Translations under genes and position numbers: made by a program | Part shown: piece by piece, positions 2,076 to 47,175 of the stretch | Numbering within the stretch: position 1 is the stretch's first letter | How the letters are laid out: each line of letters starts with the position of its first letter | The notes under the pieces: model-generated | Told to the model about the DNA's origin: nothing | The model's database searches: none | What the model saw: the letters and a program-made list of their open reading frames with translations, nothing else | Origin: Guillardia theta CCMP2712 | Lineage: Eukaryota; Protista; Cryptophyta | Direction of reading: 5' to 3' | Assembly (NCBI RefSeq): GCF_000315625.1 | Contig: NW_005434672.1 | Span: 240,006-304,005, forward strand | Length of the DNA stretch: 64,000 nucleotides

Positions 2076-5026
2076 TCAAGCGGATGCTCCGATGATGTTG
2101 CCGTTCTTATCCTTGACTCCGACCATCTATCAAAATCAAACATGTCACGTGAGAAAGTCTGCAGCCTCTCTCGCCCTTACCACACAATATTCATCGAAGT
2201 CAATCTTGCCGTCTCCTGACGTGTCATACTGCACAACAGCTTTCATTCAAAGCACACCTGCACATCCTCCCTCCTATTCATTCCTCCTCTTCATCCCTCC
2301 CCTCCTCACATCTACCCCCACCCTCACTCTCTTGGATGTAAATTACCCACCATCATGAGCACAGCTTTCAGCTGAGCGTCAGTGATGTAAACTCCTTGCT
2401 GCAACGTCGTCAGCCTTTCTTTCCTCCCTGCTGCCCTCAACATCACCAGGCGATATGCGGTCTTGAGCTCCTGAGGCCAAAGTGAGACCAAGAATACACC
2501 AGGGCCTCACATGCCCATGCAACGCCGAGGAGGATCAGGATGGGACGGGGAGAGAACGTTGGCAGCGATCAACAAAGGAAGCAGCTTACCCCGGGCTCTA
2601 TGAAACCTGACCCGTCGGTGTCGATCGCCTTGAAGACTCGTCCTACCACACGCACTTCAACTCCCTCCTCCTACCTCCATCCGCCCTCACGAGCTTCGGA
2701 GAGAGGATCAAACAAATCCCCGACTTGTTGACCTGATACCGTAGTCATTGACCTCTTCTCTTCTTGAAACTAACAAGCAATTGACCTCCCTCAACAGGAT
2801 GCATCTCCTTCTCCCGCACCTGCCAGCCCCCCATCAGCTCCCTCCCTCCTCCCCGCCTGCTGCTTCTGCCTCAATCTGCGGCTTCTCCTGCTCGTCGCCC
2901 TGCACCCATCATGTCACAAGCCCGCAAGCTGCACGCGACAAGCAGAGCATCGAGCAACGCCAAGAAAGCAAGCAAGCCCCCGCAAGCTGCCCCGAGCATC
3001 ACCTTGGATCTGTCCACGATGTGCTCCTGGTTGGGCACCCCTGCAAGTAAACGTCACCTCCTCCTCCTACAAGGCTTCGCCGGCGCCTCTCAACCGTCTT
3101 CAGGAGTGAAGTCATAGTCGTCCAGGCCTCGGATCGCCCCTGAGCTCCTCGTTACCCTCAAGGTCCTCTCCTCCTCCCCACCTCGTCCCCCACATCCCAG
3201 CACCCGAGTCTCACATTGCCCGACGTACTCCATCAGGTTGTAGTCCGGGTTGCACACGTAGTCATACGCCACGTAGCAGTACCCGCCGTCCGCCCACGTG
3301 CTGCCAACAAGCCGTCAGCTCGCTCCCCGCTCAGCCTCAGCGTCTCCTTGCCTGCCCCAGCTGTTCCTCACGATGAAGCACTGGTCGGGGTCGGAGTAGC
3401 TGCCACCCCATCACGTTCGCCCCCTCCTCCCACGAGGCGGCGCCTCCTCTACCCGACTAGCAGCAGCGCATGCGTGCCGTGCTCGGAGGCCTCCGGGTCG
3501 CTGCTGTCGGGCTTGGGAACGTACCCGCTGTTGGCAGCGGCACCTTCAGTAAGAGCGAGCAGTGACGAGGGGAGACAACTTCTTCGCCGGCTTCAAGAAG
3601 CTCTCGGTCAACCGCAGCCCAAACACTATCGGAAACCGTCCGACAGCAAGTCTGCATACGCCCATGANNNNNNNNNNNNNNNNNNNNNNNNNNNNNNNNN
3701 NNNNNNNNNNNNNNNNNNNNNNNNNNNNNNNNNNNNNNNNNNNNNNNNNNNNNNNNNNNNNNNNNNNACATGCCGTCATGCCGCCGTCCTCCAGCGGCAG
3801 GTGCTCCTCGTTGAACACTGAAAGTCACGTGGCGCGCCGACGAGACGAGGCAAGCGAGATGCGCACTGGCTGCATCCGCGAGACGTCCAACGTAATAGAT
3901 GAAAAGCCTAGGAAAGCGCGTCATGCCCTCCTCGCTCCTCCTCGTAGCCTTGCTCCTCATCCCACTTCCGTCCCCTAACCTCTTGTTTCTGCTTCCCTCG
4001 CTCTCCGTCTTGCTCGCTCCTCCCTCGCGCGCCTATTGTGCGTTCTCTTCTACCTCTCCATACTACCTTCCCTCCTTTCTCAACGCCCTTGAAAGGCTCA
4101 CGCCCTTACCTTGAGATGTCTCCTACCGTGTCCCCAGTCTTTTCTGCTTGTCGCTTGCACAGATACTCGTACGCTCCGGCCACGGCGTTGGCGCAGCAGC
4201 TGCGAGGGATCAGCACAGGCCATGAAGCAAGCAGGTCCCTCACGAGTTGGTCACTCCCTGATACTCCACGTCGGTCATCCATCTCCCTGTCATGAGCCTC
4301 CGCTTAGAGGCGTGAAGCATGCTCGAGCAGCACGAGCAGTCCTACGAAGATCCATCCGGTCCGGGATGTCGTGCCTGGGCTTGTACTCCTCGACAGGACG
4401 AGCAGACCCGAGCTTGATCCTCCTGCTAGGAGCAGCAGGCTTCTTGGGAGGGATCTGAGGATGCGGTCAGGGCATCATGCTGGAAGGGACTGATCTAAAG
4501 AGCATCATCATCGTCTTCATCATCATCCCCATCGTCATCATCATCATCATCTCCATCATCGTCATCGTCATCATCACCTCCATCGTCATCATCATCTCCA
4601 TCATAATCACTACATCTCCATCCCCATCATCATCGTCATCGTCATCATCGTCATCATCGTCATCAACATTAACATCATCATCATCATCTCCATCAACTTC
4701 ATCATCATCTCCATCGTCATCATCTCTATCATCATCATCTCTCACCCTTAGGCCTGATCACCATCATCATTTCCGTCAACTTCATAGTCATCTCTATCAC
4801 CATCAGCATCATCACCATCAGCATCGTCGTCGTCATCATCATCTCCATCAACTCTATCATCATCTCCATCATCATCATCATGATTATCGTCGTCTTTGCC
4901 GTCGTCGTCGTCATCATCATCATCATCTCCATCAACATCATCATGATCTCTCACCCTCAGGCCTCTGTTAGCGACGGCCTTGCCATCGACTATGAGGTAG
5001 TGGTGCGAGTCTTCGTTGGACGCCAT
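2076..5026 (-). CDS. Papain-family (C1A, xylellain-like) cysteine peptidase with C-terminal EF-hand pair, copy 1 (multi-exon, spans an assembly gap)
   Basis: Spliced minus-strand reading gives DIPDRMDLR, EYQGVTNS|CCANAVAGAYEYL (catalytic Cys), SRLFIYYVGR, FPIVFGLRL, EHGTHALLLVG (His), FIVRNSWG (Asn), GYCYVAYDYVCNPDYN, then EF loops AIDTDGSGFIE and YDTSGDGKIDFDEY; ends NIIGASA*. Confidence 0.88.
3668..3767. other. Assembly gap (100 N)
   Basis: N run; the paralogous copy has ~428 bp (15728-16155) at this position. Confidence 0.99.
4503..4945. repeat. Degenerate (ATC/GTC)n microsatellite filling the first intron of protease copy 1
   Basis: Directly visible; follows exon 1 (…ANRGLR|GT) on the minus strand. 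Confidence 0.9.
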
Positions 5027-6439: not shown

Positions 6440-6934
6440 ATGTCATCGACTCCTACAATACGGGTCCATCCCCGAAGAAAGCGCTTCCAGCCCTCCCTCC
6501 CTGGCGATAAAGGTACTCGCGGCGTCAGCCTCGCCTACTCCACCCTGGAGAGCTTGTTCCACCTCCCCCAGGCTCGGGCGGCCTCGTCGCTGGTAAGCCA
6601 GGAAGAGGAGGAGGAGGAGGATGTGGTGGTGGTGGTAGTGGAGAAGGAGGAGAGGGAGCGGGAGGAGGAGGGAGGTATGACGAGGGATGTTTTGCAGGGG
6701 ATCTCGCTGACAGCGTTCAAGAGCGCATGCCGGCGGCTGGGGGTAGCGCGCTGGCCGTACGAGCGGGAGGCTCGGTGCCCACGACAAGGAGGAGAGCCAC
6801 CCGGAGATACGAGGGACGAGAATACAGGACTTGTGCATGCGCAGAATCGAAACATTGAAGAGGATGAAGGAGGGCTGGATCCGGCGTGGATCGGGTGGTT
6901 TATGACAGCAAGAGGGGACTTTGGACTGGAGTAG
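6440..6934 (+). CDS. RWP-RK transcription factor, family A copy 1 (exons 6440-6592, 6698-6934; 129 aa)
   Basis: Splicing GTAAGC…TGCAG gives LESLFHLPQARAASSL-GISLTAFKSACRRLGVARWPYER, the RWP-RK consensus. Confidence 0.9.
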   Translation: MSSTPTIRVHPRRKRFQPSLPGDKGTRGVSLAYSTLESLFHLPQARAASSLVSQEEEEEEDVVVVVVEKEEREREEEGGMTRDVLQGISLTAFKSACRRLGVARWPYEREARCPRQGGEPPGDTRDENTGLVHAQNRNIEEDEGGLDPAWIGWFMTARGDFGLE

Positions 6935-7996
6935 TTGTCGTTTCGCGCGGTTTGCTTCGGGAGTTTGTCAGAGATTGCCTTTATTTGATGAGACAATATC
7001 ACTGGCTGTATGACTTCAAGGATCTCAGAATTTTGTCTTGCACTTTTGATGTACGCACAACCTTCTGGAATGAGGGAGAGCACCAGAGCAATCACTGCTG
7101 TGTTTACTAGAACACAACGAGCACGACAGTCTACTGCTGTCGGCTAGGACCTGAAACCTATTTCCCTACTCGTGCGGGGCACGTTTCCTTGTTCAGGCAT
7201 GGAAACCGATTGCTGGCAGCTTTTCCTCGTTTCCTCCTTACCGTAGTACCACTTTTGTTCATAATGAGGGTACAGATATACAATGATAAAGAGTTCAGGA
7301 AAGTTTGCTTGATCAAGCCTGAGTTTCAGTTTCGCACTACACCCTGAGCCCGAGTGATGCGTCTTGTTGTTGCCTCACTCGCGCCTCAAGAAGCATTGTC
7401 GATCATGAAGCTTCAAGTCACTGTTTCGATGGTTTTAAGAAGGAAATAAAGAGACGGAGGTTGGTCCAGGCCAGGTAGGAGTAGAAAGGCGTTTTTGCTC
7501 AAAGAATTTCGATTTGAATTTCAGCTTGTAATTTTCAACGACAACCATTGAACGATGATCCTCCGGGCCCAACTAAGCTGGAGTCTCGGCCTCGGCTGGT
7601 TAAGTTCGGCCCATGTTGCACCGCGGACTCAGATATCAATCCCCGGTCCGTCAGCATGACCGGAGTCTCCGCCCCCTCAACCGTTGCGAGTCATCCCTGC
7701 ACATGACAGCCGCTAGGGATAACCAGCGGACGATAGACGTTTTGGTGTAAGTCAGATTTTGGGACCCCACCCTCGACCTTTACTGTGCTTGACCACTACC
7801 CCTCCTGACTTCTTCCGCCTAGTAAGCTTCGCCACGTATTTCCGCGCATTTCAACTCTGCCTCCTTCCTGCCCCCTCCACTCTCCGCTCACCATCCCTAA
7901 GTTCCTCACTATCCGACCACTTGAGTGCTGCCGATCTACTCTAAGTTCCTTCCTATCCCACCCCTTGAGTTGTGCTGATCGCTGTTTCCCCTGGTA

Positions 7997-8479
7997 ATGT
8001 CGACTACTGCGATACGGGTTCATCCCCGAAGAAAGCGCTTCCAGCCCTCCCTCCCTGGCGATAAAGGTACTCGCGGCGTCAGCCTCGCCTACTCCACCCT
8101 GGAGAGCTTGTTCCACCTCCCCCAGGCTCGGGCGGCCTCGTCGCTGGTAAGCCAGGAGGAGGAGAAGGAGGAGGAGGAGGAGGAGAATGTGGTGGTGGTA
8201 GTGGAGGAGGAGGAGGAGAGGGAGCGGGAGGAGGAGGGAGGTATGACGGGGGATGTTGTGCAGGGGATCTCGCTGACAGCGTTCAAGAGCGCATGCCGGC
8301 GGCTAGGGGTAGCGCGCTGGCCGTACGAGCGGGAGGATCGGGGTAGACGTGAGGGAGAGATAGGATCGATCGTTGGTGTTGAGGAAGCATTCCTCAAGGA
8401 CAGTCTTGAAGAATCAGGACTGGATCCGGCGTGGATCGGATGGTTTGTGAAGGCAAGGGGGGGTGAAGGACTTGATTGA
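7997..8479 (+). CDS. RWP-RK transcription factor, family A copy 2 (exons 7997-8146, 8264-8479)
   Basis: Same core and intron position as copy 1; different linker. Confidence 0.9.
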   Translation: MSTTAIRVHPRRKRFQPSLPGDKGTRGVSLAYSTLESLFHLPQARAASSLVSQEEEKEEEEEENVVVVVEEEEEREREEEGGMTGDVVQGISLTAFKSACRRLGVARWPYEREDRGRREGEIGSIVGVEEAFLKDSLEESGLDPAWIGWFVKARGGEGLD

Positions 8480-9339
8480 TTGTTGTTGCGAATGGAACGC
8501 ACATGTTACCGGATTTCAATTTAAAAGCCAGATCCGAAGCGAATGTCAGCTCACCATTCGACCCTTGTTCTTTAGCTCATTCTTACATGTATGCTGTGTT
8601 GCACCTGGCAAAAGTTTAGGGTTTCAGTATTGTGGTTGAAGGAAAACGATATGGACCATTAAGCTTATAAACTACCATTCACGCCAGCGGCTTGCGTGGC
8701 TACATTCCAGCCTGCTATTGCCATGCGGGTTCACGAATGCTGATGAAGCCTCGAAAGGTGAATTTCGACAGAAAAGGGGCAAATTTACAGCGAGGAACCA
8801 AGTATGATGTAGCTCCTATAATACTTCGATTTGCCGACAGAATTTTCCGTTTCCAGACAGAATGCTCCGTCTTTTCTCTTCGATTCATCTTACACTGCTG
8901 TGCTTCTTTGTCAGATGTGTCGAACTGCTCCTTTCCTCGGCAACATAGAGCATACTCGTCCATTGAGCTGTAACAGGCTAGGTAGGTCTCATTCGTCGAG
9001 TCCTAAGGACACTTCTTCGAAGTCGTGTTGGAAGTCAGTGTCTCATCATCCGCCGTGAGAAAGTCCATAAGAGGCTTGATGAGAATTCACTGTAGACGAG
9101 TCAAACCGTAAAGCTTCGGTGTGTTAGTGACACATCGCAAAAGGCACAATCGAAGAAACACAAGTGCGTCACGGTACTGGGGCCCAATATGATTGAGCTG
9201 CTGTGCTTTCCTCTTTTGAAGGTTCAGCGAGCCTGCACTGGTTGAACTTGTGGCAGGCTTCCCAGCGCCGCAGTTAGCTTGTGAGTGCAACATTCAAACA
9301 ACCGACTCTGTCAGGCGACTGACGTTGTTCTGACTTCAG

Positions 9340-9770
9340 GAGTGCCATCCGATTTCGGCACCGTGCCACGCTCGGGGCCCGGACGATGTTTCAAGTCACA
9401 CGGTCACGTCGGACTCCAGGCTCCGGACGGCGTCCGTAGGCTCCCCGGCCCCGGGCCCCCGGATCCCCGACTCAGCGACTTCACTTATCACAGACGGTGG
9501 CCCGAGGCCGGTTGGCTCAGATTGGACCTCGGACTCCGGGATGGCCGGCCCGGCGGGCCGGGCGGGCCCGGCCCCCGCGCCGATCGGATCGCGGGCGGCC
9601 CGGCCGCTCACTGCCGGTACGCCGAGTCATCAGATGATCACCGGGGCGCTACTCCGGCCCCGCCCGGGATCTCATGGCCGGGCCCTCGGAAGACGAGAGG
9701 CGGCGCTGCCGCGCCGGGTCAGCGAGGATGACAGTGACTCGTCACGGTCACACGAGTCAGTCGTGTGTAA
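9340..9770. promoter_or_regulatory. GC-rich intergenic island
   Basis: Same composition and vocabulary (CCGG, GGCC, GTCAC/GTGAC, GAGTC) as the other islands. Confidence 0.45.
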
Positions 9771-10518
9771 GCACGTCCGCACACAATCATTCCGATTGAA
9801 AGTTGAGGTGGCAAAATCTGTACTGCCTCAGTACCAGGACATGGCATGCAAGCCTCCGACCTATGTCAGCGTGCAGGAGCAAACTTTGATCCTGTGGTCC
9901 GATCGGGTAAGAGCGAAAGCACGCCATTTCATACCCTATACTTTACAAAGCTCTACTCCGAAATGCTGACCTCGGGTACACAACTGCTCAGTGCTGACGA
10001 ACATGTTCACTTTTGCCAAGTTTGCCTGCCAAATTTTATCACTCAGGCTCTGCCCTTCGCGAGCCTCTGACTATTATGGTCCCCACAGTCGCAAGATCCC
10101 CAATTGAGTAAAATATTTGGGGAGAAGGTTCGGGGGAGGCAGTCGCAATGGCTGGGATTGAAGGTCACGTATTCCTCAATGGGGTTGAGCCTCCACCACA
10201 AGTACCTGAGGGCCTTCGCCTTTCCCACCTAGCGACGCTTTGGATAGGGGGACCCACCCTACCCCTTTATAGGCAATAATGACAAGCGCAACTTGCAACG
10301 TTTCCATTACAACCTCTTAACAAACATCCTCTTCTCCCCCAGCGAACTCAGACACCGCAACAGCAAGCCCTCGCGCTTACATTGCCTCTCTTATCACTCG
10401 CTTTGCTTTCTGGATTGCTAATTCTCTTGCTCAAATCGACACAACATTGAATCTCGACCCCTTGCCTTGTCGTAAACGCTATTGTGAACCAACTGCTTGC
10501 ACCAACGACAAACTTATC

Positions 10519-10986
10519 ATGAGCCTCGCTGTACAAATTCACCCTCGAAGGAAGCGCTTCCAGCCCTCCCTCCCTGGCGATAAAGGTACTCGCGGCGTCA
10601 GCCTCGCCTACTCCACCCTGGAGAGCTTGTTCCACCTCCCCCAGGCTCGGGCGGCCTCGTCGCTGGTAAGCCAGGAGGAGGAGGAGGAGGAGGAGGAGGA
10701 GGAGGAGGAGGAGGAGGAGGAGGAGGGAGGTATGACGAGGGATGTTGTGCAGGGGATCTCGCTGACGGCGTTGAAGAGCGCATGCCGGCGGCTGGGGGTA
10801 GCGCGCTGGCCGTACGAGCGGGAGGCTCGATACAAACAAGGAGGGATAAAGGATCGGGTAAAACCAGCTGATGAAAGTGAGACGGATGTACTCGAGAGCT
10901 GCGAAGGCGTCCTTGAGAAAAGAGGGCTGGATCCGGCGTGGATCGGATGGTTCGTGTCGGCGAGCGGGAATGCAGGGCTTGAATGA
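10519..10986 (+). CDS. RWP-RK transcription factor, family A copy 3 (exons 10519-10665, 10753-10986)
   Basis: ATG at 10519 (MSLAVQIHPRRK); same core; intron contains a pure (GAG)n run. Confidence 0.9.
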   Translation: MSLAVQIHPRRKRFQPSLPGDKGTRGVSLAYSTLESLFHLPQARAASSLVSQEEEEEEEEEEEEEEEEEGGMTRDVVQGISLTALKSACRRLGVARWPYEREARYKQGGIKDRVKPADESETDVLESCEGVLEKRGLDPAWIGWFVSASGNAGLE

Positions 10987-11561
10987 GCTTCGATGATGCT
11001 TGATTTGCACCTTTGTTTTGTGTGCAACTTGCCTAGCACAGTGATTGGTTCTGTAACATATTTGAGTCATCCAGCTTTGCTGGAGGTTTTGTATATTACC
11101 ACATTAGTTAATTTGATTTAGCCTAATGATTAGATAAAGATCGAGTAATGCCTCAACCAGACATTCAACAAGGTAATTATCCTTTAGCATAGAGTGTTTC
11201 GAAGAAACATACAAACAAGAAAAGCCGGAACAAGCTGTCGTTACCATTAATTTCTGCTCTCATTCACAGATTTATTGTTATCGGTGCATCTATGAAACTC
11301 TTGCAACTGTTCCTTCACCTTCGGGCTTTGCCGAGCCTCTCTTTCAGTCAAATGTCACGTGGTGCATGTGTTCGAAGCGAAGATCGAAAAGGTCTAGTTT
11401 CGGTTTCAAACCGTCTTAGCGACGCACTTTCTACCCCCTCCCTCCCCCTCCCCCTCCTCCTTGATAACTCAGGCGAACAAGCACATCGTGATTGATCACA
11501 TCGTGAAGTACCTGCAGTGATATCAGCACAACACAAAACGAGATCAATCATTACCTGACTG

Positions 11562-11950
11562 ATGACTACCACTACTACTGTTCGCGTCCATCCTCGAAGA
11601 AAGCGCTTCCAGCCCTCCCTCCCTGGCGATAAAGGTACTCGCGGCGTCAGCCTCGCCTACTCCACCCTGGAGAGCTTGTTCCACCTCCCCCAGGCTCGGG
11701 CGGCCTCGTCGCTGGTAAGCCATTGGGAGGAGGAGGAAGAGGGAGGAGGAGGGAGGAGGGAGGTATGACGAGGGATGTTGTGCAGGGGATCTCGCTGACG
11801 GCGTTGAAGAGCGCATGCCGGCGGCTGGGGGTAGCGCGCTGGCCGTACGAGCGATTGGAACTCGGGCACATCAAAGAAGGCGGGCCAGGGCTGGATCCGG
11901 CATGGATCGGATGGTTCATGTTGGCGTCAGAATGTGAAGGATTGGAGTGA
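11562..11950 (+). CDS. RWP-RK transcription factor, family A copy 4 (exons 11562-11714, 11786-11950)
   Basis: Two ORF-track fragments join in frame after removing a 71-nt GT-AG intron. Confidence 0.9.
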
Positions 11951-13221
11951 CGAGACTGCAATGTGTTTCAAGCTTATTATTAGTTCAATTAGGCCATTAC
12001 CATCAACGCCTAGTTTGCTTCCTTGTTCTTGATACGTGCCAACAGTGGTGATGGCTGATTTTGAGCAATGGCATAGAAAACCACACCGTTGATCCATATA
12101 TCTATGATGCTTGACGTATTTTAATTCATTGAACATTAGTACTTCACCTTGCGCTGAAGGTTTACCTTGTCTACTTGGGACTACCTCGGAAAAGTTAATT
12201 TCTGTGTCACATGGCCAAAAAGTCGGAGAGACGCATCTTTGTGCGTTTTCGATCATCGGATGACTCCACGTGGCCCTAAGGGAGATCTCCGGCGCCCCTG
12301 CGATGAACGCCAGGGACGCTTTAAACCTGTTGGTTTACACCAAAGAAATCCCTCTGCATTTGAAATTTGAGCGGACCAATTCAACTTATCTCCGGTTGAT
12401 CGAACGACTAGTTGAATGTGACCCCCTTTGTAGTCGTAGCTGTGGACGCTGAAGGCCTCAGTTATGTTAAGTGAGCTCAGTTCTCAAAGCCGTAGGCTCC
12501 TCAGCCTGCTTTTCTAAGGGTACCACCCTCGTTTTCCCATAGGAACTCACCTCGCCCCTGTTGCACCTAGCGCGTGATAAAAGATGCACCCCTTGTGGCA
12601 GTTTTAGCACCCCTACCCTCTTTATCCATGACCCCTCATTCAACATACCCCTAGTTTCACCTTCACACATCTGAGAACAGTACCCCCCCTTTCAGTATTG
12701 GCGAGGCAATGAGGGCTGACGAGGCATGGAATATCTTCTCCTCGCATCTACACCTGCAAGAGGAAACCCACTACCCCTGGTTTCGACATGTACCAGGAGG
12801 GGTGGCTAGATTTAACCCTGCAGATTTCAGCATGTACCCTCACCCCCTGTCCTCCCTGCTCCCGGAAGGGACCAAAATGATCAGGGGAGCTCAACTTGGC
12901 TCGCTTCACTTTCACCCTCTTGTCCCGCTTTTCTTCACCTCCCGTTGCTCCGCCGCCACTGAAATCCCCTGACATGCTTCCTTGTGTACCTTCACCCATG
13001 GTCTCCTCCACTTTCAGCTCAGTCTCCATGCATCCGTCCACTTTGTTTATTTCTGTCCTTGCTTTTTCCTCCTTGATTCATTAGTTGAAAACTTGTCTCT
13101 TGTAACCACAATTGTTCATTAGCCCGGCTATTGCACACACAAAAGAAAGTGATCTATCACAAAGATCTGTGTCCAAACGAATCATCGCTTACTCCTCTTT
13201 TCAGAACCATCTTGTACAAGT

Positions 13222-13660
13222 ATGCCCACCACTACTACTGTTCGCGTCCATCCCCGAAGAAAGCGCTTCCAGCCCTCCCTCCCTGGCGATAAAGGTACTC
13301 GCGGCGTCAGCCTCGCCTACTCCACCCTGGAGAGCTTGTTCCACCTCCCCCAGGCTCGGGCGGCCTCGTCGCTGGTAAGCCAGGAGGAGGAGGAGGAGGG
13401 AGAGGGAGGAGGAGGGAGGTATGACGAGGGATGTTTTGCAGGGGATCTCGCTGACGGCGTTCAAGAGCGCATGCCGGCGGCTGGGGGTAGCGCGCTGGCC
13501 GTACGAGCGAGCAGAAACTCGTTGTGAGCGAGTGGATGAAAAATCGCAAGACATGGAACAGGCGGAGGAGGGCATTGGAGAGGACCATGCGGTAGGAGGG
13601 CTGGATCCGGCATGGATCGGATGGTTCGTGTCGGCGAGCGAGGATGCAGAGCTTTGGTGA
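13222..13660 (+). CDS. RWP-RK transcription factor, family A copy 5 (exons 13222-13374, 13442-13660)
   Basis: Two ORF-track fragments join in frame after removing a 67-nt GT-AG intron. Confidence 0.9.
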
Positions 13661-14142
13661 GGAGATTGACGAAAATTGGAAGATAGAGAGGGAGATATTT
13701 CAGACTCAAGTTAAGGATGTATCGGTATCGTGCATCATGGAAGATATTCATCCGTCTGTGTCAGCAGTTTCCTTTGGCTCATTTCAAGATGCTGACATGT
13801 ATGTTGTATTAGTAATTCATTTGATAACCTGGAAAAGATAAATTTAAATGCCTGTCGCTAATCTGCTTGCTACGTTGCATAATCCCTTTGATAGAACCCA
13901 AGTCAAGTACAGCACTGTCAAGGTTGGGAGAGCTGATGCTTGCACTGCCGATTGAATCTGTCTGAATCACCAATCAATCATCACGGTCATAAACATGTGC
14001 TGAGGGCCGAGCTCTGATGCATGCATCTTCCTGCTCCAAAGTTGCTGCATCAAGGCACGACTGACTTCCACTGCTTTTGCCAAGAAATCATTGTGTCTTG
14101 ACTCCGATTCCAATCTGGGCAAGAAAAATACAAAGTAAAGAA

Positions 14143-17100
14143 TCATGTCAATGCTTGAATGATGTTTCCAGCCTTGTCTTTGATCCCAACCATCTTCGGC
14201 ATAAACATCACTGCACAGCTTGTGCCATCGATTTTCATACCACACAATATTCATCGAAGTCAATCTTGCCGTCTCCTGACGTGTCATACTGCACAAGCAC
14301 CTGTCATGAATCCATCGCTCGAAATAGCCTGAGGCATTATAAACCTCCAATGTATCATTGCCATCTAACTGAAAAACCCTTCTATGCATCATTTCTCTAC
14401 ATCATGACTTACAATCTTGAGCACAGCTTTCAGCTGAGCGTCAGTGATGTAAACTCCTTGCTGCAACGTCGTCAGCCTTTCTTTCCTCCCCTGCTGCCCT
14501 CAACATCACCAGGCGATATGCGGTCTTGAGCTCCTGAGGCCAAAGTGAGACCAAGAATACACCAGGGCCTCACATGCCCATGCAACGCCGAGGAGGATCA
14601 GGATGGAACGGGGAGAGAATGTTGGCAGCGATCAACAAAGGAAGCAGCTTACCCCGAGCTCTATGAAACCTGACCCGTCTGTGTCGATCGCCTTGAAGAC
14701 TCGTCCTACCACACGCACTTCAACTCCCTCCTCCTACCTCCATCCGCCCTCACGAGCTTCAGCAATGATGTCAAAAAGGTCTCCCGACTCCTGACCTAAG
14801 CAGGGTACTAAGATTGGCTTTGAGTTCAGGCAACACTCCTGACCTCCCTCAACAGGATGCATCTCCTTCTCCCGCACCTGCCAGCCCCCCATCAGCTCCC
14901 TCCCTCCTCCCCGCCTGCTGCTTCTGCCTCAATCTGCGGCTTCTCCTGCTCGTCGCCCTGCACCCATCATGTCACAAGCCCGCGAGCTGCACGCGACAAG
15001 CAGAGCATCGAGCAACGCCAAGACAGCAAGCAAGCCCCCGCAAGCTGCCCCGAGCATCACCTTGGATCTGTCCACGATGTGCTCCTGGTTGGGCACCCCT
15101 GCAAGTAAACGTCACCTCCTCCTCCTACAAGGCTTCGCCGGCGCCTCTCAACCGTCTTCAGGAGTGAAGTCATAGTCGTCCAGGCCTCGGATCGCCCCTG
15201 AGCTCCTCGTTACCCTCCAGGCCCTCTCCTCCTCCCCACCTCGTCCCCCACATCCCAGCACCCGAGTCTCACATTGCCCGACGTACTCCACCAGGTTGTA
15301 GTCCGGGTTGCACACGTAGTCATACGCCACGTAGCAGTACCCGCCGTCCGCCCACGTGCTGCCACCAAGCCGTCAGCTCGCTCCCCGCTCAGCCTCAGCG
15401 TCTCCTTGCCTGCCCCAGCTGTTCCTCACGATGAAGCACTGGTCGGGGTCGGAGTAGCTGCCACCCCATCACGTTCGCCCCCTCCTCCCACGAGGCGGCG
15501 CCTCTTCTACCCGACTAGCAGCAGCGCATGCGTGCCGTGCTCGGAGGCCTCCGGGTCGCTGCTGTCGGGCTTGGGAACGTACCCGCTGTTGGCAGCGGCA
15601 CCTTCAGTAAGGGCGAGCAGTGACGAGGGGAGACAACTTCTTCGCCGGCTTCAAGAAGCTCTCGGTCAACCGCAGCCCAAACACTATCGGAAAACCGTCC
15701 GACAAGCAAGTCTGCATACGCCCATGAGACCCTCCATCCCCCTCTCCCAGCCTTATGTCCATGCCCGACCCTCTTCCTCCTCTTATTCCTTCTGTCTCCT
15801 CCTGTCCCCCTCCCATTGGCTTGCCTTCATGGTCTGAAGGTCGAGCGGCACTTTCATGGCATCGCGGATCTTGTACCTCAGCGCCTGCCAGCAGCAGCTC
15901 AGTATCCTCTGCTCAAGCGACAGACGCGAGCAGTAAAGCCAGCACCTCCTCGAAGCAGTGATCATGCGGCTTGTGGTTCACCTTCCCTCATCAAAGTCCC
16001 AGTTCTTCTCAAGGCACGCTCCCTTGCTCTGCCGTCACGCCTGTCATCCCTCCTCTCTCTTTCTCCTCTCGCGTCGCATGCTTGCCTGCAGCGCCTTGAT
16101 CGCACCGTCGACCTGCCCATCATCGCCGTCACTTCTCTCGCCTCCCTCCGCCGCCACATGCCGTCATGCCGCCGTCCTCCAGCGGCAGGTGCTCCTCGTT
16201 GAACACTGAAAGTCACGTCACGCGCCGACGAGACGAGGCAAGCGAGATGCGCACTGGCTGCATCCGCGAGACGTCCAACGTAATAGATGAAAAGCCTAGG
16301 AAAGCGCGTCATGCCCTCCTCGCTCCTCCTCGTAGCCTTGCTCCTCATCCCCCTCCCGCCCCCCCACCTCTTGTTTCTGCTTTTCTCGCTCTCCGTCTTG
16401 CTCGCTCCTCCCTCGCACGACTATTGTGCGTTCTCTTCTACCTCTCCATACTACCTTCTCTCCTTTCTCAACGCCCTTGAAAGGCTCACGCCCTTACCTT
16501 GAGATGTCTCCTACCGTGTCCCCAGTCTTTTCTGCTTGTCGCTTGCACAGATACTCGTACGCTCCGGCCACGGCGTTGGCGCAGCAGCTGCGAGGGATCA
16601 GCACAGGCCATGAAGCAAGCAGGTCCCTCACGAGTTGGTCACTCCCTGATACTCCACGTCCGTCATCCATCTCCCTGCCATGAGCCTCCGCTTAGAGGCG
16701 TGAAGCATGCTCGAGCAGCACGAGCAGTCCTACGAAGATCCATCCGGTCCGGAATGTCGTGCCTGGGCTTGTACTCCTCGACAGGACGAGCAGACCCGAG
16801 CTTGATTCTCCTGCTAGGAGCAGCAGGCTTCTTGGGAGGGATCTGAGGATGCGGTCAGGGCATCATGCTGGAAGGGACTGATCTAAAGAGCATCATCATC
16901 GTCATCATCATCATCATCATCATCATCATCTCCATCATCGTCATCGTCATCATCATCTCCATCATCATCATCATCATCTCCATCATCATCATCATCTCTA
17001 TCGTCATCTACATCTCCATCTCCATCATCATCTCCATCATCATCTCCATCAACTTCATCATCATCTCCATCGTCATCATCTCTATCGTCATCATCTCCAT

Positions 17101-17200
17101 CATCATTTCTATCATCATCATCTCTCACCCTCAGGCCTCTGTTAGCGACGGCCTTGCCGTCGACTAGGATGTAGTGTCGAGATCCCTGTGAAGACGCCAT
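14143..17200 (-). CDS. Papain-family (C1A) cysteine peptidase with C-terminal EF-hand pair, copy 2
   Basis: Same catalytic and EF-hand motifs as copy 1; starts MASSQGSRHYILVDGKAVANRGLR and ends NIIQALT*. Confidence 0.88.
16890..17122. repeat. (ATC)n-type microsatellite in the first intron of protease copy 2
   Basis: Directly visible; about half the length of the copy-1 equivalent. Confidence 0.9.
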
Positions 17201-17482
17201 GCTAGCCTTGTTCACTAGTTAGCAGGTGGGGGAGGAGGCTTCCCTTCACAGTGTAGTAGGGTGAGAGGGTATGGTCGATTTCCTTTTGGTTTACTTAATA
17301 AAAACTCAAGCCTGGGGGCTATACTGCAGGGTCAGGTCTGATGATTTTGTTGGCCTGAGCAGATATCATTACTAGCTGGCGGAGTTTTTTCGGATCTTTT
17401 ACTAACTTAGCTCGATCAGTATCTCATTCTTGTATGTCCTGCACGAAGGCATGTGCGGAGAAGATCGTCAGAACCTTCTTGC

Positions 17483-18075
17483 CTTGTTTGCTACCCACAT
17501 ACGCTGTGATCTTGTTTGCTACCCACATACGCTGTGATCTTGTTTGCTACCCACATATGCTGTGATCTTGTTTGCTACCCACATATGCTGTGATCTTGTT
17601 TGCTACCCACATATGCTGTGATCTTGTTTGCTACCCACATATGCTGTGATCTTGTTTGCTACCCACATATGCTGTGATCTTGTTTGCTACCCACATATGC
17701 TGTGATCTTGTTTGCTACCCACATATGCTGTGATCTTGTTTGCTACCCACATATGCTGTGATCTTGTTTGCTACTCACATATGCTGTGATCTTGTTTGCT
17801 ACTCACATATGCTGTGATCTTGTTTGCTACCCACATATGCTGTGATCTTGTTTGCTACCCACATATGCTGTGATCTTGTTTGCTACTCACATATGCTGTG
17901 ATCTTGTTTGCTACCCACATATGCTGTGATCTTGTTTGCTACCCACATATGCTGTGATCTTGTTTGCTACCCACATATGCTGTGATCTTGTTTGCTACCC
18001 ACATATGCTGTGATCTTGTTTGCTACTCACATATGCTGTGATCTTGTTTGCTACCCACATATGCTGTGATCTTGT
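17483..18075. repeat. 28-bp minisatellite CTTGTTTGCTACCCACATATGCTGTGAT, 21 copies plus a partial
   Basis: Head-to-tail units with only two variant positions (CCC/CTC, TAT/TAC); no spacers. Confidence 0.97.
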
Positions 18076-18264
18076 ATGCTAGAAACTTGTCTTGCAGCCC
18101 TAACCTATTTCCTGCTTTGGTTGTGAAGGACTTGTCGTGCTTAATATGTGACAATACATGCTTTCTTGCTGCGTATGTGTTCTTCGTTGATCAACATTAC
18201 ATCCTCTGTAATCTGCTAACGTCTCATCGTCCTCCATACTAGCGCAGGCGAAGAGGCATCGGCC

Positions 18265-30343: not shown

Positions 30344-31441
30344 CTATCCCTCACTCTCCTCAATCTTCGTTGATAGTCGAATCTGCTTGCATTCCTTACA
30401 GTTGAATCTGACTCGATCGTGTTCACAGATCCCAGGCCCTTTGCACTCTCTGCATATCGACCTTAGCCTGTCATGTTCACATATACCAGATCCTTTGCAC
30501 TCTCGACAGACAATCCTCCGACGGTTGTGGATGCAGATACCTGCACCTTTGCAATCCTTGCAGACAGAGCGCACTCTGTTGTGCTCACATATGCCTGACC
30601 CCTTGCAATCTTTGCACATGGCCCGCTGTTTCCCGTGCTGACAGATTCCGCTTCCATGGCATTCTCTGCATACATCCTTCCTGCGAAGATGCTGGCATAA
30701 ACTGGAGCCTCCGCATTCTCTACAGACTGAGCGCACACAATTATGTTCACATACTCCAGATCCCCTGCATAGCTTGCATGCAAACCTCACTCGGTTGTGG
30801 ATGCAGATGCCAGATCCTTTACAGTCCTTGCAAAATATCCTCTGCTTCATGTGCATACAGATTTCGGAGCCACCACAAGCTTTGCACCGCGTTCTCCTCT
30901 GCCCGTGTTTGCAGATCTCCGATCCTCCACACTCCACACATCTCGCGCGTTTTTGAAGATGCTCGCATATTCCTGAGCCTCGACAGTCTTTACAAAACGA
31001 CCTCTTGCGGTTATGCTCGCAAATCGCTGATCCACCGCATTCTCTGCAGTCATATTTCGTTTTTCCGTGCATGCATTTTGCTTTGTACTGCTTCTTCCTT
31101 TTCCGTTTGCCCCCTCCTACAGTATCAGTGGCCTGCTGCTCCTCATTTCCTTGCTGCTCATCATTTCCTTGCTGCTCATCATTTCCTTGCTGCTCATCAT
31201 TTCCTTGCTGCTTCTCAACGGTTGCAGGTTTGTCCTGAGCATTACCCTCCCCTTTCATTCTCTCCATTGGCTCCTCTTTCATTGTGTCGATTATAACTTC
31301 TTTCATTGTCTCACTTGAGTGTTCTTTCACAGTCTCAATGGTAACTTCTTTCATAATCTCACCTGATTGTTCTCTCATGCTCTTACTTGAGTTTTCCTTC
31401 ATCACTTCTGTGGACGCCTCGCAATTGCTCCTCTCATGCAT
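30344..31441 (-). CDS. Intronless Cys/His repeat protein (13 x 18-aa C-x-H-x6-C-x2-C-x-G units), basic NLS, putative zinc-binding
   Basis: 365-aa uninterrupted ORF; repeats such as ICEHNRVRSVCKDCKGAG; KRKRKKQ; QQGN(D/E)E x4. Confidence 0.85.
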   Translation of the reverse strand: MHERSNCEASTEVMKENSSKSMREQSGEIMKEVTIETVKEHSSETMKEVIIDTMKEEPMERMKGEGNAQDKPATVEKQQGNDEQQGNDEQQGNDEQQGNEEQQATDTVGGGKRKRKKQYKAKCMHGKTKYDCRECGGSAICEHNRKRSFCKDCRGSGICEHLQKRARCVECGGSEICKHGQRRTRCKACGGSEICMHMKQRIFCKDCKGSGICIHNRVRFACKLCRGSGVCEHNCVRSVCRECGGSSLCQHLRRKDVCRECHGSGICQHGKQRAMCKDCKGSGICEHNRVRSVCKDCKGAGICIHNRRRIVCRECKGSGICEHDRLRSICRECKGPGICEHDRVRFNCKECKQIRLSTKIEESEG

Positions 31442-41384: not shown

Positions 41385-41878
41385 CCTATCCTCATGTCCT
41401 GCTGCTACAAATTCCCGCAGTTGATCGTTGAAGGGTGGAACCACATTCTTTTTTTGCGGTTTTAAATCCTTTTTCCCTTCAAAAGGTACCAGAAAATATT
41501 GTTTTTTTGGAAGTAATGATGAGCCGTTACCCAATGATCCCCAAAACATGTGAGCGAAGAATCATGCCGAATAAACAATCAATGAGCCCGTGAACACTCA
41601 TGCCTAAAATAAAACAACGAACAAACAACAAACAACAAAAACGAACAAAACAAACTCCGACCTCGCCAATACTATGCTTGACGGCAATCCAGACTGAGGC
41701 TCATGATCAACGAGCAATCTCACCATGCCGGCATATCACGATCAAGCTCGACGGCTAAGCGCTCTCAGTCTCGCCTTGCATCGCTAGCACCCTCGCCATA
41801 TGCAGACATAGTCGTTTATTCAAGTACATCCAATAACATCATGCTCCCGATATCCTACATGCATCCCTCGGCCCTCCC

Positions 41879-42595
41879 TCAATCGCTGCTGTACACCTCC
41901 CTCCGCCTCCCTCCCGTGCTCCCCCGCTTCCCCTGGTGCTTGTACGGCCAGTGCCCTACTCCCAGCCGCCTGCACACCAGCTTCATGGTCGACTTGCCGA
42001 TGCCGATCTTGGCCGCCGCGACCTCGAGGCTCTCGTGGAAGTGCTCTGCCAGCCGCTCCCGCGTGATCTCCACCGGCCCGTCCCCTGCCGTGAGCTGCCG
42101 GGAGTGGATCACGACGACGTCTGGCCTGGTGGGCAGGCTGCGGAGACGGGCAGCTCCTGCGGCTGTGCGGGACGCGCCGAGGCCCTGAGACGCTGGCTCA
42201 GGCTGGTCTGGTGTCGGGGACTCCGGAATCCTGTGGGCGGCGATGTAGCAGCTGTCGAGCTGGTCCTCGGGCTCGTCCGGGATGCCGACGGCGTCGAGGG
42301 CGGCGGCCCAGTCTCCGCCGAGCACGAGAGGGGAGGCAAGCAGAGCGTGCCAGTCTGGCTCGAAGCCAGCCTTACAAGCTCCATGCGCCTTGGGGAGGCT
42401 TGGGATGGGGTATGACTTGAGGGGAGCCTCGGTGGGAGAAGAGAAGGCGGAGGAGGGCTGGGAGCCGGCGGTCGAGGTAGACAAGTCCAGCCAGTCGGCA
42501 CTGGATACTGATGAGCATGCGCTCATGTCATCCTCCATGTCGTAGCTCGTGTCGCTTGGGCTCCACGCGGTTAAGCTCTCGTCGTCAGACCACAT
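41879..42595 (-). CDS. RWP-RK protein, family B copy 1 (intronless; 238 aa from MWSDD, 328 aa if the ATG at 42865 is used)
   Basis: ITRERLAEHFHESLEVAAAKIGIGKSTMKLVCRRLGVGHWPYK; acidic Ser-rich N-terminus. Confidence 0.85.
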   Translation of the reverse strand: MWSDDESLTAWSPSDTSYDMEDDMSACSSVSSADWLDLSTSTAGSQPSSAFSSPTEAPLKSYPIPSLPKAHGACKAGFEPDWHALLASPLVLGGDWAAALDAVGIPDEPEDQLDSCYIAAHRIPESPTPDQPEPASQGLGASRTAAGAARLRSLPTRPDVVVIHSRQLTAGDGPVEITRERLAEHFHESLEVAAAKIGIGKSTMKLVCRRLGVGHWPYKHQGKRGSTGGRRREVYSSD

Positions 42596-43402
42596 GTTGG
42601 AGGGTAGAGTAAGTGTCGTGGGGGAGGTGGTGCACAGATAGTCTGGATAGGGGGATAGGGAGAGAAAGGGCGGGCTGTCTGTCTGTAGCCTGGAGGTTGT
42701 AGCTTGCTGGCCGTGCCTGGTGCTCCGGGCTGAGTGTGCTGGTGGCAAGGCTGCGGACAGAGAGGTCTTGTAGGGGAGGGCGCAGGGGGAAAGTGGACAT
42801 GGAGGCGGATCTGAGGTCACGGGATCACGCTGACGGGAGCATGCTGAAGCGACGCGAGGGTGCATTTTACCTCACGTATCACCAAGCAGCATTCGAAGCC
42901 GCGAGAAGCGTCTCGAGTTGTCTCGCTCTACTCGCGGAGATCAAGTCCGAGAAGGTGAGTGTTTTCGTATTCCTGCTCCGGGCCGGATTTATGACTTGGG
43001 CTAGATCGCATCGCTTGGGCGGCTTCAGAGAATGGAGGCCGGAAAGAGCTGCGTTATCAGGGTTAGCGGACCGTGACAGGTGCTCTGCAGACATATCTCC
43101 TAACTGACTTGGTCGCCAAGCTCCGACATCCAAAAAGGGTGTCCGGCTGGCAAGTGGACGATGCCGACTCAAGACCAACTCCGACCTCGCCAATACTATG
43201 CTTGACGGCAATCCAGACTGAGGCTCATGATCAACGAGCAATCTCACCATGCCGGCATATCACGATCAAGCTCGACGGCTAAGCGCTCTCAGTCTCGCCT
43301 TGCATTGCTAGCACCCTCGCCATATGCAGACATAGTCGTTTATTCAAGTACATCCAATAACATCATGCTCCCGTTATCCTACATGCATCCCTCGGCCCTC
43401 CC

Positions 43403-44119
43403 TCAATCGCTGCTGTACACCTCCCTCCGGCTCCCTCCCTTGCTCCCCCGCTTCCCCTGGTGCTTGTACGGCCAGTGCCCTACTCCCAGCCGCCTGCACA
43501 CCAGCTTCATCGTCGACTTGCCGATGCCGATCTTGGCCGCCGCGACCTCGAGGCTCTCGTGGAAGTGCTCTGCCAGCCGCTCCCGCGTGATCTCCACCGG
43601 CCCGTCCCCTGCCGTTAGCTGCCGGGAGTGGATCACGACGACGTCTGGCCTGGTGGGCAGGCTGCGGAGACGGGCAGCTCCTGCGGCTGTGCGGGACGCG
43701 CCGAGGCCCTGAGACGCTGCCTCTGGCTGATCTGGCGTCGGGGACTCCGGAATCCTGTGGGCGGCGATGTAGCAGCTGTCGAGCTGGTCTTCGGGCTCGT
43801 CCGGGATGCCGACGGCGTCGAGGGCGGCGGCCCAGTCTCCGCCGAGCACGAGAGGGGAGGCAAGCAGAGCGTGCCAGTCTGGCTCGAAGCCAGCCCTACA
43901 AGCTCCAGGCGCCTTGGGGAGGCTTGGGATGGGGTATGACTTGAGGGGAGCCTCGGTGGGAGAAGAGAAGGCGGAGGAGGGCTGGGAGCCGGCGGTCGAG
44001 GTAGACAAGTCCAGCCAGTCGACGCTGGATACTGATGAGCATGCGCTCATGTCATCCTCCATGTCGTAGCTCGTGTCGCTTGGGCTCCACGCGGTTAAGC
44101 TCTCGTCGTCAGACCACAT
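43403..44119 (-). CDS. RWP-RK protein, family B copy 2
   Basis: Near-identical to copy 1. Confidence 0.85.
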   Translation of the reverse strand: MWSDDESLTAWSPSDTSYDMEDDMSACSSVSSVDWLDLSTSTAGSQPSSAFSSPTEAPLKSYPIPSLPKAPGACRAGFEPDWHALLASPLVLGGDWAAALDAVGIPDEPEDQLDSCYIAAHRIPESPTPDQPEAASQGLGASRTAAGAARLRSLPTRPDVVVIHSRQLTAGDGPVEITRERLAEHFHESLEVAAAKIGIGKSTMKLVCRRLGVGHWPYKHQGKRGSKGGSRREVYSSD

Positions 44120-44930
44120 GTTGGAGGGTAGAGTAAGTGTCGTGGGGGAGGTAGTGCACAGATAGTCTGGATAGGTGGATAGGGAGAGAAAGGGTGGGCT
44201 GTCTGTCTGTAGCCTGGTGGTTGTAGCTTGCTGGCCGTGCCTGGTGCTCCGGGCTGAGTGTGCTGGTGGCAAGGCTGCGGACAGAGAGGTCTTGTAGGGG
44301 AGAGCGCAGGGGGAAAGTGGACATGGAGGCGAATCTGAGGTCACGGGATCACGCTGACGGGAGCATGCTGAAGCGACGCGAGGGTGCATTTTACCTCACG
44401 TATCACCAAGCAGCATTCGAAGCCGCGAGAAGCGTCTCGAGTTGTCTCGCTCTACTCTCGGAGATCAAGTCCGAGAAGGTGAGTGTTTTCGCATTCCTGC
44501 TCCGGGCCGGATTTATGACTTGGGCTAGATCGCATCGCTTGGGCGGCTTCAGAGAATGGAGGCCGGAAAGAGCTGCGTTATCAGGGTTAGCGGACCGTGA
44601 CAGGTGCTCTGCAGACATATCTCCTAACTGACTTGGTCGCCAAGCTCCGACATCCAAAAAGGGTGTGCCAGGCTGGCAAGTGGACGATGCCGACTCAAGA
44701 CCAACTCCGACCTCGCCAATACTATGCTTGACGGCAATCCAGACTGAGGCTCATGATCAACGAGCAATCTCACCATGCCGGCATATCACGATCAAGCTCG
44801 ACGGCTAAGCGCTCTCAGTCTCGCCTTGCATTGCTAGCACCCTCGCCATATGCAGACATAGTCGTTTATTCAAGTACATCCAATAACATCATGCTCCCGT
44901 TATCCTACATGCATCCCTCGGCCCTCCCTC

Positions 44931-45647
44931 TCAATCGCTGCTGTACACCTCCCTCCGGCTCCCTCCCTTGCTCCCCCGCTTCCCCTGGTGCTTGTACGGC
45001 CAGTGCCCTACTCCCAGCCGCCTGCACACCAGCTTCATCGTCGACTTGCCGATGCCGATCTTGGCCGCCGCGACCTCGAGGCTCTCGTGGAAGTGCTCTG
45101 CCAGCCGCTCCCGCGTGATCTCCACCGGCCCGTCCCCTGCCGTGAGCTGCCGGGAGTGGATCACGACGACGTCTGGCCTGGTGGGCAGGCTGCGGAGACG
45201 GGCAGCTCCTGCGGCTGTGCGGGACGCGCCGAGGCCCTGAGACGCTGCCTCTGGCTGATCTGGCGTCGGGGACTCCGGAATCCTGTGGGCGGCGATGTAG
45301 CAGCTGTCGAGCTGGTCTTCGGGCTCGTCCGGGATGCCGACGGCGTCGAGGGCGGCGGCCCAGTCTCCGCCGAGCACGAGAGGGGAGGCCAGCAGAGCGT
45401 GCCAGTCTGGCTCGAAGCCAGCCCTACAAGCTCCAGGCGCCTTGGGGAGGCTTGGGATGGGGTATGACTTGAGGGGAGCCTCGGTGGGAGAAGAGAAGGC
45501 GGAGGAGGGCTGGGAGCCGGCGGTCGAGGTAGACAAGTCCAGCCAGTCGACGCTGGATACTGATGAGCATGCGCTCATGTCATCCTCCATGTCGTAGCTC
45601 GTGTCGCTTGGGCTCCACGCGGTTAAGCTCTCGTCGTCAGACCACAT
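44931..45647 (-). CDS. RWP-RK protein, family B copy 3
   Basis: Near-identical to copy 1. Confidence 0.85.
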   Translation of the reverse strand: MWSDDESLTAWSPSDTSYDMEDDMSACSSVSSVDWLDLSTSTAGSQPSSAFSSPTEAPLKSYPIPSLPKAPGACRAGFEPDWHALLASPLVLGGDWAAALDAVGIPDEPEDQLDSCYIAAHRIPESPTPDQPEAASQGLGASRTAAGAARLRSLPTRPDVVVIHSRQLTAGDGPVEITRERLAEHFHESLEVAAAKIGIGKSTMKLVCRRLGVGHWPYKHQGKRGSKGGSRREVYSSD

Positions 45648-46458
45648 GTTGGAGGGTAGAGTAAGTGTCGTGGGGGAGGTAGTGCACAGATAGTCTGGAT
45701 AGGTGGATAGGGAGAGAAAGGGTGGGCTGTCTGTCTGTAGCCTGGTGGTTGTAGCTTGCTGGCCGTGCCTGGTGCTCCGGGCTGAGTGTGCTGGTGGCAA
45801 GGCTGCGGACAGAGAGGTCTTGTAGGGGAGAGCGCAGGGGGAAAGTGGACATGGAGGCGGATCTGAGGTCACGGGATCACGCTGACGGGAGCATGCTGAA
45901 GCGACGCGAGGGTGCATTTTACCTCACGTATCACCAAGCAGCATTCGAAGCCGCGAGAAGCGTCTCGAGTTGTCTCGCTCTACTCTCGGAGATCAAGTCC
46001 GAGAAGGTGAGTGTTTTCGCATTCCTGCTCCGGGCCGGATTTATGACTTGGGCTAGATCGCATCGCTTGGGCGGCTTCAGAGAATGGAGGCCGGAAAGAG
46101 CTGCGTTATCAGGGTTAGCGGACCGTGACAGGTGCTCTGCAGACATATCTCCTAACTGTCTTGGTCGCCAAGCTCCGACATCCAAAAAGGGTGTGCCAGG
46201 CTGGCAAGTGGACGATGCCGACTCAAGACCAACTCCGACCTCGCCAATACTATGCTTGACGGCAATCCAGACTGAGGCTCATGATCAACGAGCAATCTCA
46301 CCATGCCGGCATATCACGATCAAGCTCGACGGCTAAGCGCTCTCAGTCTCGCCTTGCATTGCTAGCACCCTCGCCATATGCAGACATAGTCGTTTATTCA
46401 AGTACATCCAATAACATCATGCTCCCGTTATCCTACATGCATCCCTCGGCCCTCCCTC

Positions 46459-47175
46459 TCAATCGCTGCTGTACACCTCCCTCCGGCTCCCTCCCTTGCT
46501 CCCCCGCTTCCCCTGGTGCTTGTACGGCCAGTGCCCTACTCCCAGCCGCCTGCACACCAGCTTCATCGTCGACTTGCCGATGCCGATCTTGGCCGCCGCG
46601 ACCTCGAGGCTCTCGTGGAAGTGCTCTGCCAGCCGCTCCCGCGTGATCTCCACCGGCCCGTCCCCTGCCGTTAGCTGCCGGGAGTGGATCACGACGACGT
46701 CTGGCCTGGTGGGCAGGCTGCGGAGACGGGCAGCTCCTGCGGCTGTGCGGGACGCGCCGAGGCCCTGAGACGCTGCCTCTGGCTGATCTGGCGTCGGGGA
46801 CTCCGGAATCCTGTGGGCGGCGATGTAGCAGCTGTCGAGCTGGTCTTCGGGCTCGTCCGGGATGCCGACGGCGTCGAGGGCGGCGGCCCAGTCTCCGCCG
46901 AGCACGAGAGGGGAGGCAAGCAGAGCGTGCCAGTCTGGCTCGAAGCCAGCCCTACAAGCTCCAGGCGCCTTGGGGAGGCTTGGGATGGGGTATGACTTGA
47001 GGGGAGCCTCGGTGGGAGAAGAGAAGGCGGAGGAGGGCTGGGAGCCGGCGGTCGAGGTAGACAAGTCCAGCCAGTCGACGCTGGATACTGATGAGCATGC
47101 GCTCATGTCATCCTCCATGTCGTAGCTCGTGTCGCTTGGGCTCCACGCGGTTAAGCTCTCGTCGTCAGACCACAT
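46459..47175 (-). CDS. RWP-RK protein, family B copy 4
   Basis: Near-identical to copy 1. Confidence 0.85.
   Translation of the reverse strand: MWSDDESLTAWSPSDTSYDMEDDMSACSSVSSVDWLDLSTSTAGSQPSSAFSSPTEAPLKSYPIPSLPKAPGACRAGFEPDWHALLASPLVLGGDWAAALDAVGIPDEPEDQLDSCYIAAHRIPESPTPDQPEAASQGLGASRTAAGAARLRSLPTRPDVVVIHSRQLTAGDGPVEITRERLAEHFHESLEVAAAKIGIGKSTMKLVCRRLGVGHWPYKHQGKRGSKGGSRREVYSSD

Follow-up and report, generated by a model that had tools for sequence, protein, structure and literature searches.

A 64,000-nucleotide stretch of the Guillardia theta CCMP2712 genome (positions 240,006 to 304,005 of contig NW_005434672.1; this whole stretch is called the window, and its own coordinates are used throughout) carries at 6440-13660 a cluster of five two-exon RWP-RK genes. 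All five lie on the + strand and encode proteins of 105-129 amino acids (aa). Our analysis indicates that the cluster is very probably an old local array of small RKD-type RWP-RK genes under mosaic concerted evolution, in which the DNA-binding blocks of neighbouring copies are kept almost identical while the segments around them have diverged past alignment. The process is a known one and the sharpness of this case is unusual; there is no evidence for a programmed variable system.

Each gene has an ATG start, an intact frame and a GT-AG intron at an identical codon boundary. Exon 1 measures 147-153 nucleotides (nt), and exon 2 stops ten codons past a tryptophan motif, GLDPAWIGWF. The five copies, and the blocks that they share, are as follows.

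Copy 1: 6440-6934 (+), 129 aa; exon 1 6440-6592, intron 6593-6697 (105 nt), exon 2 6698-6934; linker 6767-6871 (35 aa), motif 6872-6901
Copy 2: 7997-8479 (+), 121 aa; exon 1 7997-8146, intron 8147-8263 (117 nt), exon 2 8264-8479; linker 8333-8416 (28 aa), motif 8417-8446
Copy 3: 10519-10986 (+), 126 aa; exon 1 10519-10665, intron 10666-10752 (87 nt, GAG repeat), exon 2 10753-10986; linker 10822-10923 (34 aa), motif 10924-10953
Copy 4: 11562-11950 (+), 105 aa; exon 1 11562-11714, intron 11715-11785 (71 nt), exon 2 11786-11950; linker 11855-11887 (11 aa), motif 11888-11917
Copy 5: 13222-13660 (+), 123 aa; exon 1 13222-13374, intron 13375-13441 (67 nt), exon 2 13442-13660; linker 13511-13597 (29 aa), motif 13598-13627
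Homogenised block 1 (copy 1 coordinates): 6464-6601 (+), last 129 nt of exon 1 plus 9 nt of the intron donor
Homogenised block 2 (copy 1 coordinates): 6665-6766 (+), last 33 nt of the intron plus 69 nt of exon 2
Motif block (copy 1 coordinates): 6872-6901 (+), GLDPAWIGWF, followed in all five copies by a 10-aa tail and the stop

The introns of copies 1-3 (6593-6697, 8147-8263 and 10666-10752) are in frame and free of stops, and their retention would place a poly-Glu stretch inside the DNA-binding domain; copies 4 and 5 have out-of-frame introns.

Block 1 encodes the first strand and helices of the RWP-RK domain. Its exon-1 core differs between pairs of copies at 0-5 of 129 nt, all at the 5' edge; over the final 114 nt of this exon, the five copies agree at every position, synonymous ones among them. 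The exon-2 core of block 2 (1-4 differences in 69 nt) has a sharp end that coincides with the end of the RWP-RK domain, with identity stopping 14-24 nt past the start of the Trp codon. Between the two cores, the intron is almost identical over its first 9 and last 33 nt, with a slipping GAG repeat in the middle. Differences between pairs of copies then amount to 0-3 in the 30 nt of the motif block and 6-17 in the 33 nt of the tail. Synonymous divergence (p) is 0.00-0.08 in the cores, 0.30 in the motif block and 0.57 in the tail, and is not uniform along the genes. An earlier reading of this stretch from its letters alone (the sequence-only reading) had described three near-identical nucleotide blocks. 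This description holds for the two cores; the motif block shows no amino-acid change among the five copies, and is less homogenised as DNA.

The segments around these blocks are of a different character. Linkers of 35, 28, 34, 11 and 29 aa in copies 1-5 cannot be aligned with one another (z from -1.0 to 1.7 against codon shuffles), and no relationship is apparent among the 300-nt flanks (z at most 1.0), both as first described. The tails are intermediate in divergence; they stay in register, and their homology can still be detected (z up to 8). All five linkers lack a stop (P = 0.0004 under base shuffling) and share one frame (about 1/81), and we therefore take all copies to be under selection as proteins.

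Selection on the protein is nevertheless not a sufficient explanation for the identity of the cores. The exon-1 core has no differences at 25 four-fold sites, against a four-fold divergence of 0.61 between clusters, and the chance of such identity for one pair is about 6e-11; between clusters, the RWP-RK segment is 45% diverged at four-fold sites even for pairs with the same amino acids. Sharing among the five copies is also not tree-like, with four-gamete conflicts in 12 of 28 informative-site pairs. The mosaic pattern that had been proposed is borne out for the 5' ends of copies 4 and 5 (92% identical) and the tails of copies 3 and 5 (6 differences in 33 nt); the third case, a linker start common to copies 1 and 3, is weak, extending over about 8 nt with copy 2 nearly as similar. 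As the intron is kept and its ends are homogenised, the donor would have been DNA rather than complementary DNA. The cores have a guanine-plus-cytosine (GC) content of 0.80 at four-fold sites, and the linkers one of 0.38. A comparison across clusters gives 0.81 when a domain has a near-identical neighbour and 0.49 when it lacks one (p = 4e-6). Raised four-fold GC in the cores is expected of GC-biased conversion, a criterion used in PMC2720389.

The same pattern is found elsewhere in the genome. A first look at the 87.1 Mb (669 contigs) of the G. theta assembly gave 571 RWP-RK candidates, organised in local clusters, some of which are plain recent duplications. One intronless member of the family has the same sequence as a protein recorded under G. 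theta CCMP2712. We fetched 40 stretches around other RWP-RK matches and sampled 36 clusters; at least 15 of these hold a neighbour pair with a near-identical DNA-binding block that ends no more than 50 nt from the Trp codon, mostly 14-21 nt from it, in direct and inverted pairs alike. Paralogues can be compared with an orthologue at cluster L008, where two paralogue types have the same exon-2 core and each departs from a metagenome orthologue at 2 synonymous codons. In the linker, the two types differ from each other by 32 mismatches and 105 gap positions, and one type differs from its orthologue by only 15 mismatches and 21 gap positions. At L008, paralogues are thus closer than the orthologue within the tract, and the reverse is true in the linker. 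Taken together, the four-gamete conflicts, the four-fold identity, the raised GC, the recurrent sharp boundaries and L008 support the proposal of segmental gene conversion of the DNA-binding block.

Two side observations concern related sequences. The L003/L004 locus (G000:C104:89500-104800) holds ten RWP-RK genes in an alternating, convergent arrangement; they fall into two types whose cores are identical, and two copies of one type stop 24 aa past the Trp, losing the motif. In X8, a freshwater metagenome with a wild relative a few percent diverged from the reference, one contig matching 10499-10666 combines the N-terminus of copy 3 with the majority paralogue state at synonymous sites 10542, 10545 and 10551, and carries a synonymous G at 10617 that is absent from all five reference copies, at about 2-4 times the unique depth. 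These states hint at a shifted conversion boundary together with a strain-wide shared change, and for the five-gene cluster they are no more than suggestive of paralogues being closer than orthologues in the tract. The upstream part of this contig is unlike the window, and it may be another arrangement.

Near-identical cores amid unrelated flanks would also be expected if the DNA-binding block had recently been copied as a mobile unit, or if whole genes had been duplicated and then replaced very rapidly outside it, and some clusters are truly recent whole-unit duplications, among them the array at 41.6-51.3 kb of the window. We consider this origin improbable for the five genes. The motif, the 10-aa tail and the stop are in register in all five copies, with homologous tails; the sharing is mosaic rather than tree-like; identical cores are confined to neighbours, with other loci at most 76-88% identical across the core; and inspection of the block edges revealed no terminal repeats or target duplications.

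Nucleotide-level selection acting without conversion, whether on codon use, splicing signals, RNA structure or a DNA element, is more improbable still. The intron ends do contain splice signals, and some motif codons are common to another cluster. However, the same protein segment is 45-61% diverged at four-fold sites between clusters, even with the same amino acids, and each cluster has its own fixed synonymous states.

The sequence-only reading had called the linker hypervariable and named cassette exchange as an alternative to gene conversion. In active cassette exchange or targeted diversification, the linker would be swapped or hypermutated between constant blocks to yield a variable repertoire. 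The constant-variable-constant anatomy with its sharp edges invites this interpretation, as do linkers that are always in frame and free of stops, but the comparison with other sequences gives it very little room. No second genomic match was found for the linkers of copies 1, 2, 3 and 5, although such a search can miss sequences, and the 33-nt linker of copy 4 is too short for a DNA search. The X8 relative keeps the linkers of copies 2 and 5 with few substitutions: the stretch from the copy 2 linker into its flank has 8 differences in 547 nt, and the copy 5 linker has three listed substitutions, two of which are synonymous. The pieces listed from a DNA run (X1) contain no alternative linker. 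The flanks are as unalignable as the linkers, and age alone accounts for both. Compared in this way, the linkers read as fixed, orthologous segments that evolve at about the rate of the flanks, and are old rather than hypervariable; they look hypervariable because the cores have repeatedly been made young.

Read data over window 7900-13800 were used to assess the integrity of the assembly and transcription. For copies 2-5, X1 contigs extend from the core across linker and motif into the flank without a difference, including pieces at 10800-11442 for copy 3 and at 11825-11916 and 11888-13275 for copy 4, all with zero differences. Depth in X1 is 294 over the shared exon-1 block and 52-80 over unique parts, a ratio that fits about five real copies. 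The assembly is a draft and short-read contigs break at the shared blocks, but a consensus artefact from collapsed reads is scarcely credible given these contigs, this depth, and the intron lengths and several core sites that differ among copies. In an RNA-type run (X6), one contig joins exon 1 to exon 2 of copy 2 at the predicted intron, with the copy's own 5' end at a depth of 402; another covers 13480-13800 in copy 5, and the tail of copy 1 is likewise present in an X6 contig. At least three copies (1, 2 and 5) are transcribed. Neither of the findings that would have undercut the cluster, blocks made identical by assembly or a lack of expression, is seen. One X6 contig spans 8307-10581, from exon 2 of copy 2 to exon 1 of copy 3, and skips a 59-nt GT-AG intron at 9281-9339; a long 3' untranslated region, read-through or an unannotated transcript are candidate readings of it.

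Homologue and domain searches were made exon by exon. Exon 2 alone matches the Pfam RWP-RK family (PF02042) in all five copies, at 30.6-35.1 bits against a cut-off of 29.3, and no other Pfam family was found on either exon. The literal RWPxRK signature is absent, as all five copies read RWPYER, and yet the profile still matches; most of the sampled G. theta family members deviate likewise. At 105-129 aa, the proteins have neither the N-terminal GAF-like nitrate-sensing region nor the C-terminal PB1 domain of NLP/NIT2 factors. They fall within the operational RKD rule of TAPscan v4 (PMC11712027), an RWP-RK domain without an NLP domain. Neither the unspliced frame of copy 3 nor the second exon of copy 1 found a homologue when used as a query; a profile built from the exon-2 frames did. 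A passing mention of 56 RWP-RK-like genes is made in a preprint on Rhodomonas salina.

Among full-length relatives, the closest to the five copies is P0081 from Hanusia phi; the two nearest H. phi proteins have no genomic contig on record. A structure model of this protein, built on a 60-sequence alignment, has an RWP-RK core with three helices at a predicted local distance difference test score of about 96, a linker of low confidence, and a helix at residues 110-119, which is the predicted helix of the tryptophan motif; exon 2 folded as a single sequence gave low confidence. In a fold search with the P0081 model, the nearest solved folds were bacterial helix-turn-helix domains, with Z up to 4.3, which is not significant. 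A PDB search found no sequence match to any solved RWP-RK structure, and a match to ferulic acid esterase (E 0.24) was taken as chance.

GLDPAWIGWF is the local form of a family motif, [LI][DE]xxW[IL]xW[YF] followed by acidic residues in the consensus of 94 database proteins. The genome search that the sequence-only reading called for gave 37 matches to D-x-x-W-I-x-W-[FY] against 1 for a reversed control, and at least 30 of the 37 lie within 400 nt of an RWP-RK match. A looser form is present in 71 of 125 gene matches of the fetched loci (a few counted twice where loci overlap). The motif is thus family-wide rather than special to this cluster. All motif-bearing proteins with an organism name are from G. 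theta or Hanusia phi, and the motif is kept in the H. phi orthologues. An ESM Atlas search with it gave no usable match. The suggestion that it is undescribed agrees with the literature that we found: no paper on the motif or on this RWP-RK expansion was located, in a search that left out most subscription journals, so that absence is not proof. The motif does look undescribed and, among the proteins with an organism name, specific to cryptophytes.

The net charge from linker to stop is -4 to -11, and the 94-protein consensus combines an acidic context with an aromatic and large hydrophobic core near the C-terminus, which is the pattern of AHA (aromatic, large hydrophobic, acidic context) motifs. 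Our leading guess, by analogy, is that the motif most resembles an acidic-aromatic activation helix. Activation is accordingly the role to which we would give slightly better than even chances; packing on the domain or dimerisation is possible at a clearly lower probability, a corepressor contact is somewhat more doubtful, and a degron is unlikely. In another RWP-RK subfamily, a second class of C-terminal motif, roughly L[LM]EEALxHV, stands in place of the tryptophan motif; it occurs in G. theta and Hanusia phi (L020, L026, L029 and L030; proteins P0029, P0031, P0032 and P0034).

The window contains several other features. At 41646-51347 lies a second RWP-RK array, in which a unit of about 1528 bp occurs six times in tandem and once more inverted. 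The tandem units are 99-100% alike, flanks included, and the proteins of this array stop 23 aa past the Trp and lack the tryptophan motif. This array is a recent whole-unit expansion, in contrast to the five-gene cluster. A duplicated segment of about 2.5 kb, 93-96% identical and in direct orientation, flanks the five-gene cluster on both sides (2178-4755 and 14238-17138). The - strand at 30344-31441 holds a 365-aa frame of Cys/His-rich repeats of the CxxCxGxxICxH type, and a minisatellite with 28-nt units lies at 17343-18221.

We propose that mosaic concerted evolution of the five genes proceeded as follows. After duplication long ago, the flanks and the acidic, probably disordered linker would have diverged past alignment, a divergence that is observed directly. 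Purifying selection may have left the DNA-binding domain alike enough to serve as a substrate for ectopic recombination among neighbours. Repeated short, GC-biased conversion tracts at the DNA level, for which the patterns above argue strongly, would keep this block and the adjacent intron ends identical, and the tracts would end where homology ends, at the edges of the domain. The tryptophan motif would be kept by selection at the protein level and converted less often or longer ago. The proteins are most likely minimal activators, in which a DNA-binding domain common to all copies is followed by an acidic spacer tolerant of change and, at the C-terminus, by an amphipathic helix that may dock on a cofactor.

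Several points weigh against this account. Conversion is deduced from sequence patterns, with no event caught directly, and the paralogue-versus-orthologue comparison at L008 concerns another cluster than the five genes and one orthologous copy. The 36 clusters were picked from the top search matches, so 15 of 36 is not a genome-wide rate, and codon bias could account for part of the GC contrast. The motif is assigned its role from composition and analogy alone. On the side of expression, no X6 contig was seen to contain the linker of copy 3 or copy 4, which does not show that these copies are silent, and a raw-read RNA run yielded only 16 reads.

A bolder and rather doubtful extension is that each array is a selected repertoire, with conversion favoured for a single DNA specificity and selected against in linkers and promoters, and with the W[IL]xW[YF] helix as a cryptophyte-specific dock for one cofactor. 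If so, hundreds of mini-factors would tune shared targets via promoter, spacer and stability. Mosaic concerted evolution is of consequence without this extension. Its scale is unusual, with neighbours in a family of hundreds tied to a single DNA-binding sequence as their promoters and spacers diverge, and this provides a natural test bed for how conversion limits or delays the divergence of DNA specificity. Trees or dates drawn from the RWP-RK domain will take old paralogues for recent duplicates. The conserved tryptophan motif offers a new and testable way into the question of how RWP-RK factors of cryptophytes engage the transcription machinery.

Comparison with known systems places the cluster more precisely. 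In cassette systems with silent donors, such as those of antigenic variation, donor copies of the variable segment exist and strains differ in it at the same locus; here four linkers match only themselves, and copies 2 and 5 keep theirs in X8. The five copies resemble the RKD/MID-type factors of PMC11712027 in being small, with a single RWP-RK domain above the Pfam cut-off and without NLP extras, and differ from them in reading RWPYER rather than RWPxRK and in the C-terminal W[IL]xW[YF] motif. They also differ in number, with 571 first-look candidates in G. theta against 1-14 RKD genes per species in the corresponding row of the TAPscan table of that paper. The AHA activation motifs of plant HSF and HD-Zip I factors, with Trp or Phe in an acidic C-terminal context (PMC3060862), share with the tryptophan motif this core and context near the C-terminus, and a poorly conserved region between it and the DNA-binding domain. 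Consensus, family and lineage are different, and the likeness is one of composition.

For the conversion itself, the closest parallel is Dlxa/Dlxb of Capitella teleta, where a tract of about 150 bp comprising homeodomain and intron has been converted between linked paralogues that are highly diverged in the remainder, with a second short tract of about 30 bp (PMC3199776); that paper also cites concerted evolution of the hexapod engrailed family. As in the G. theta cluster, part of a DNA-binding domain and the adjoining intron are homogenised between linked paralogues; G. theta differs in having five direct copies, many clusters and a family of hundreds in a unicellular alga. Mosaic concerted evolution has also been described for the mammalian pairs BMP8A/B, DDX19A/B and TUBG1/2, with TLR1/TLR6 discussed alongside them, and it was proposed that binding regions stay alike while other parts diverge (PMC2720389). 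These pairs likewise have some segments evolving in concert and others diverging, with third-position GC raised in the converted segments. Their tracts have no clear match to functional domains, whereas in G. theta the tract ends fall at the edges of the RWP-RK domain.

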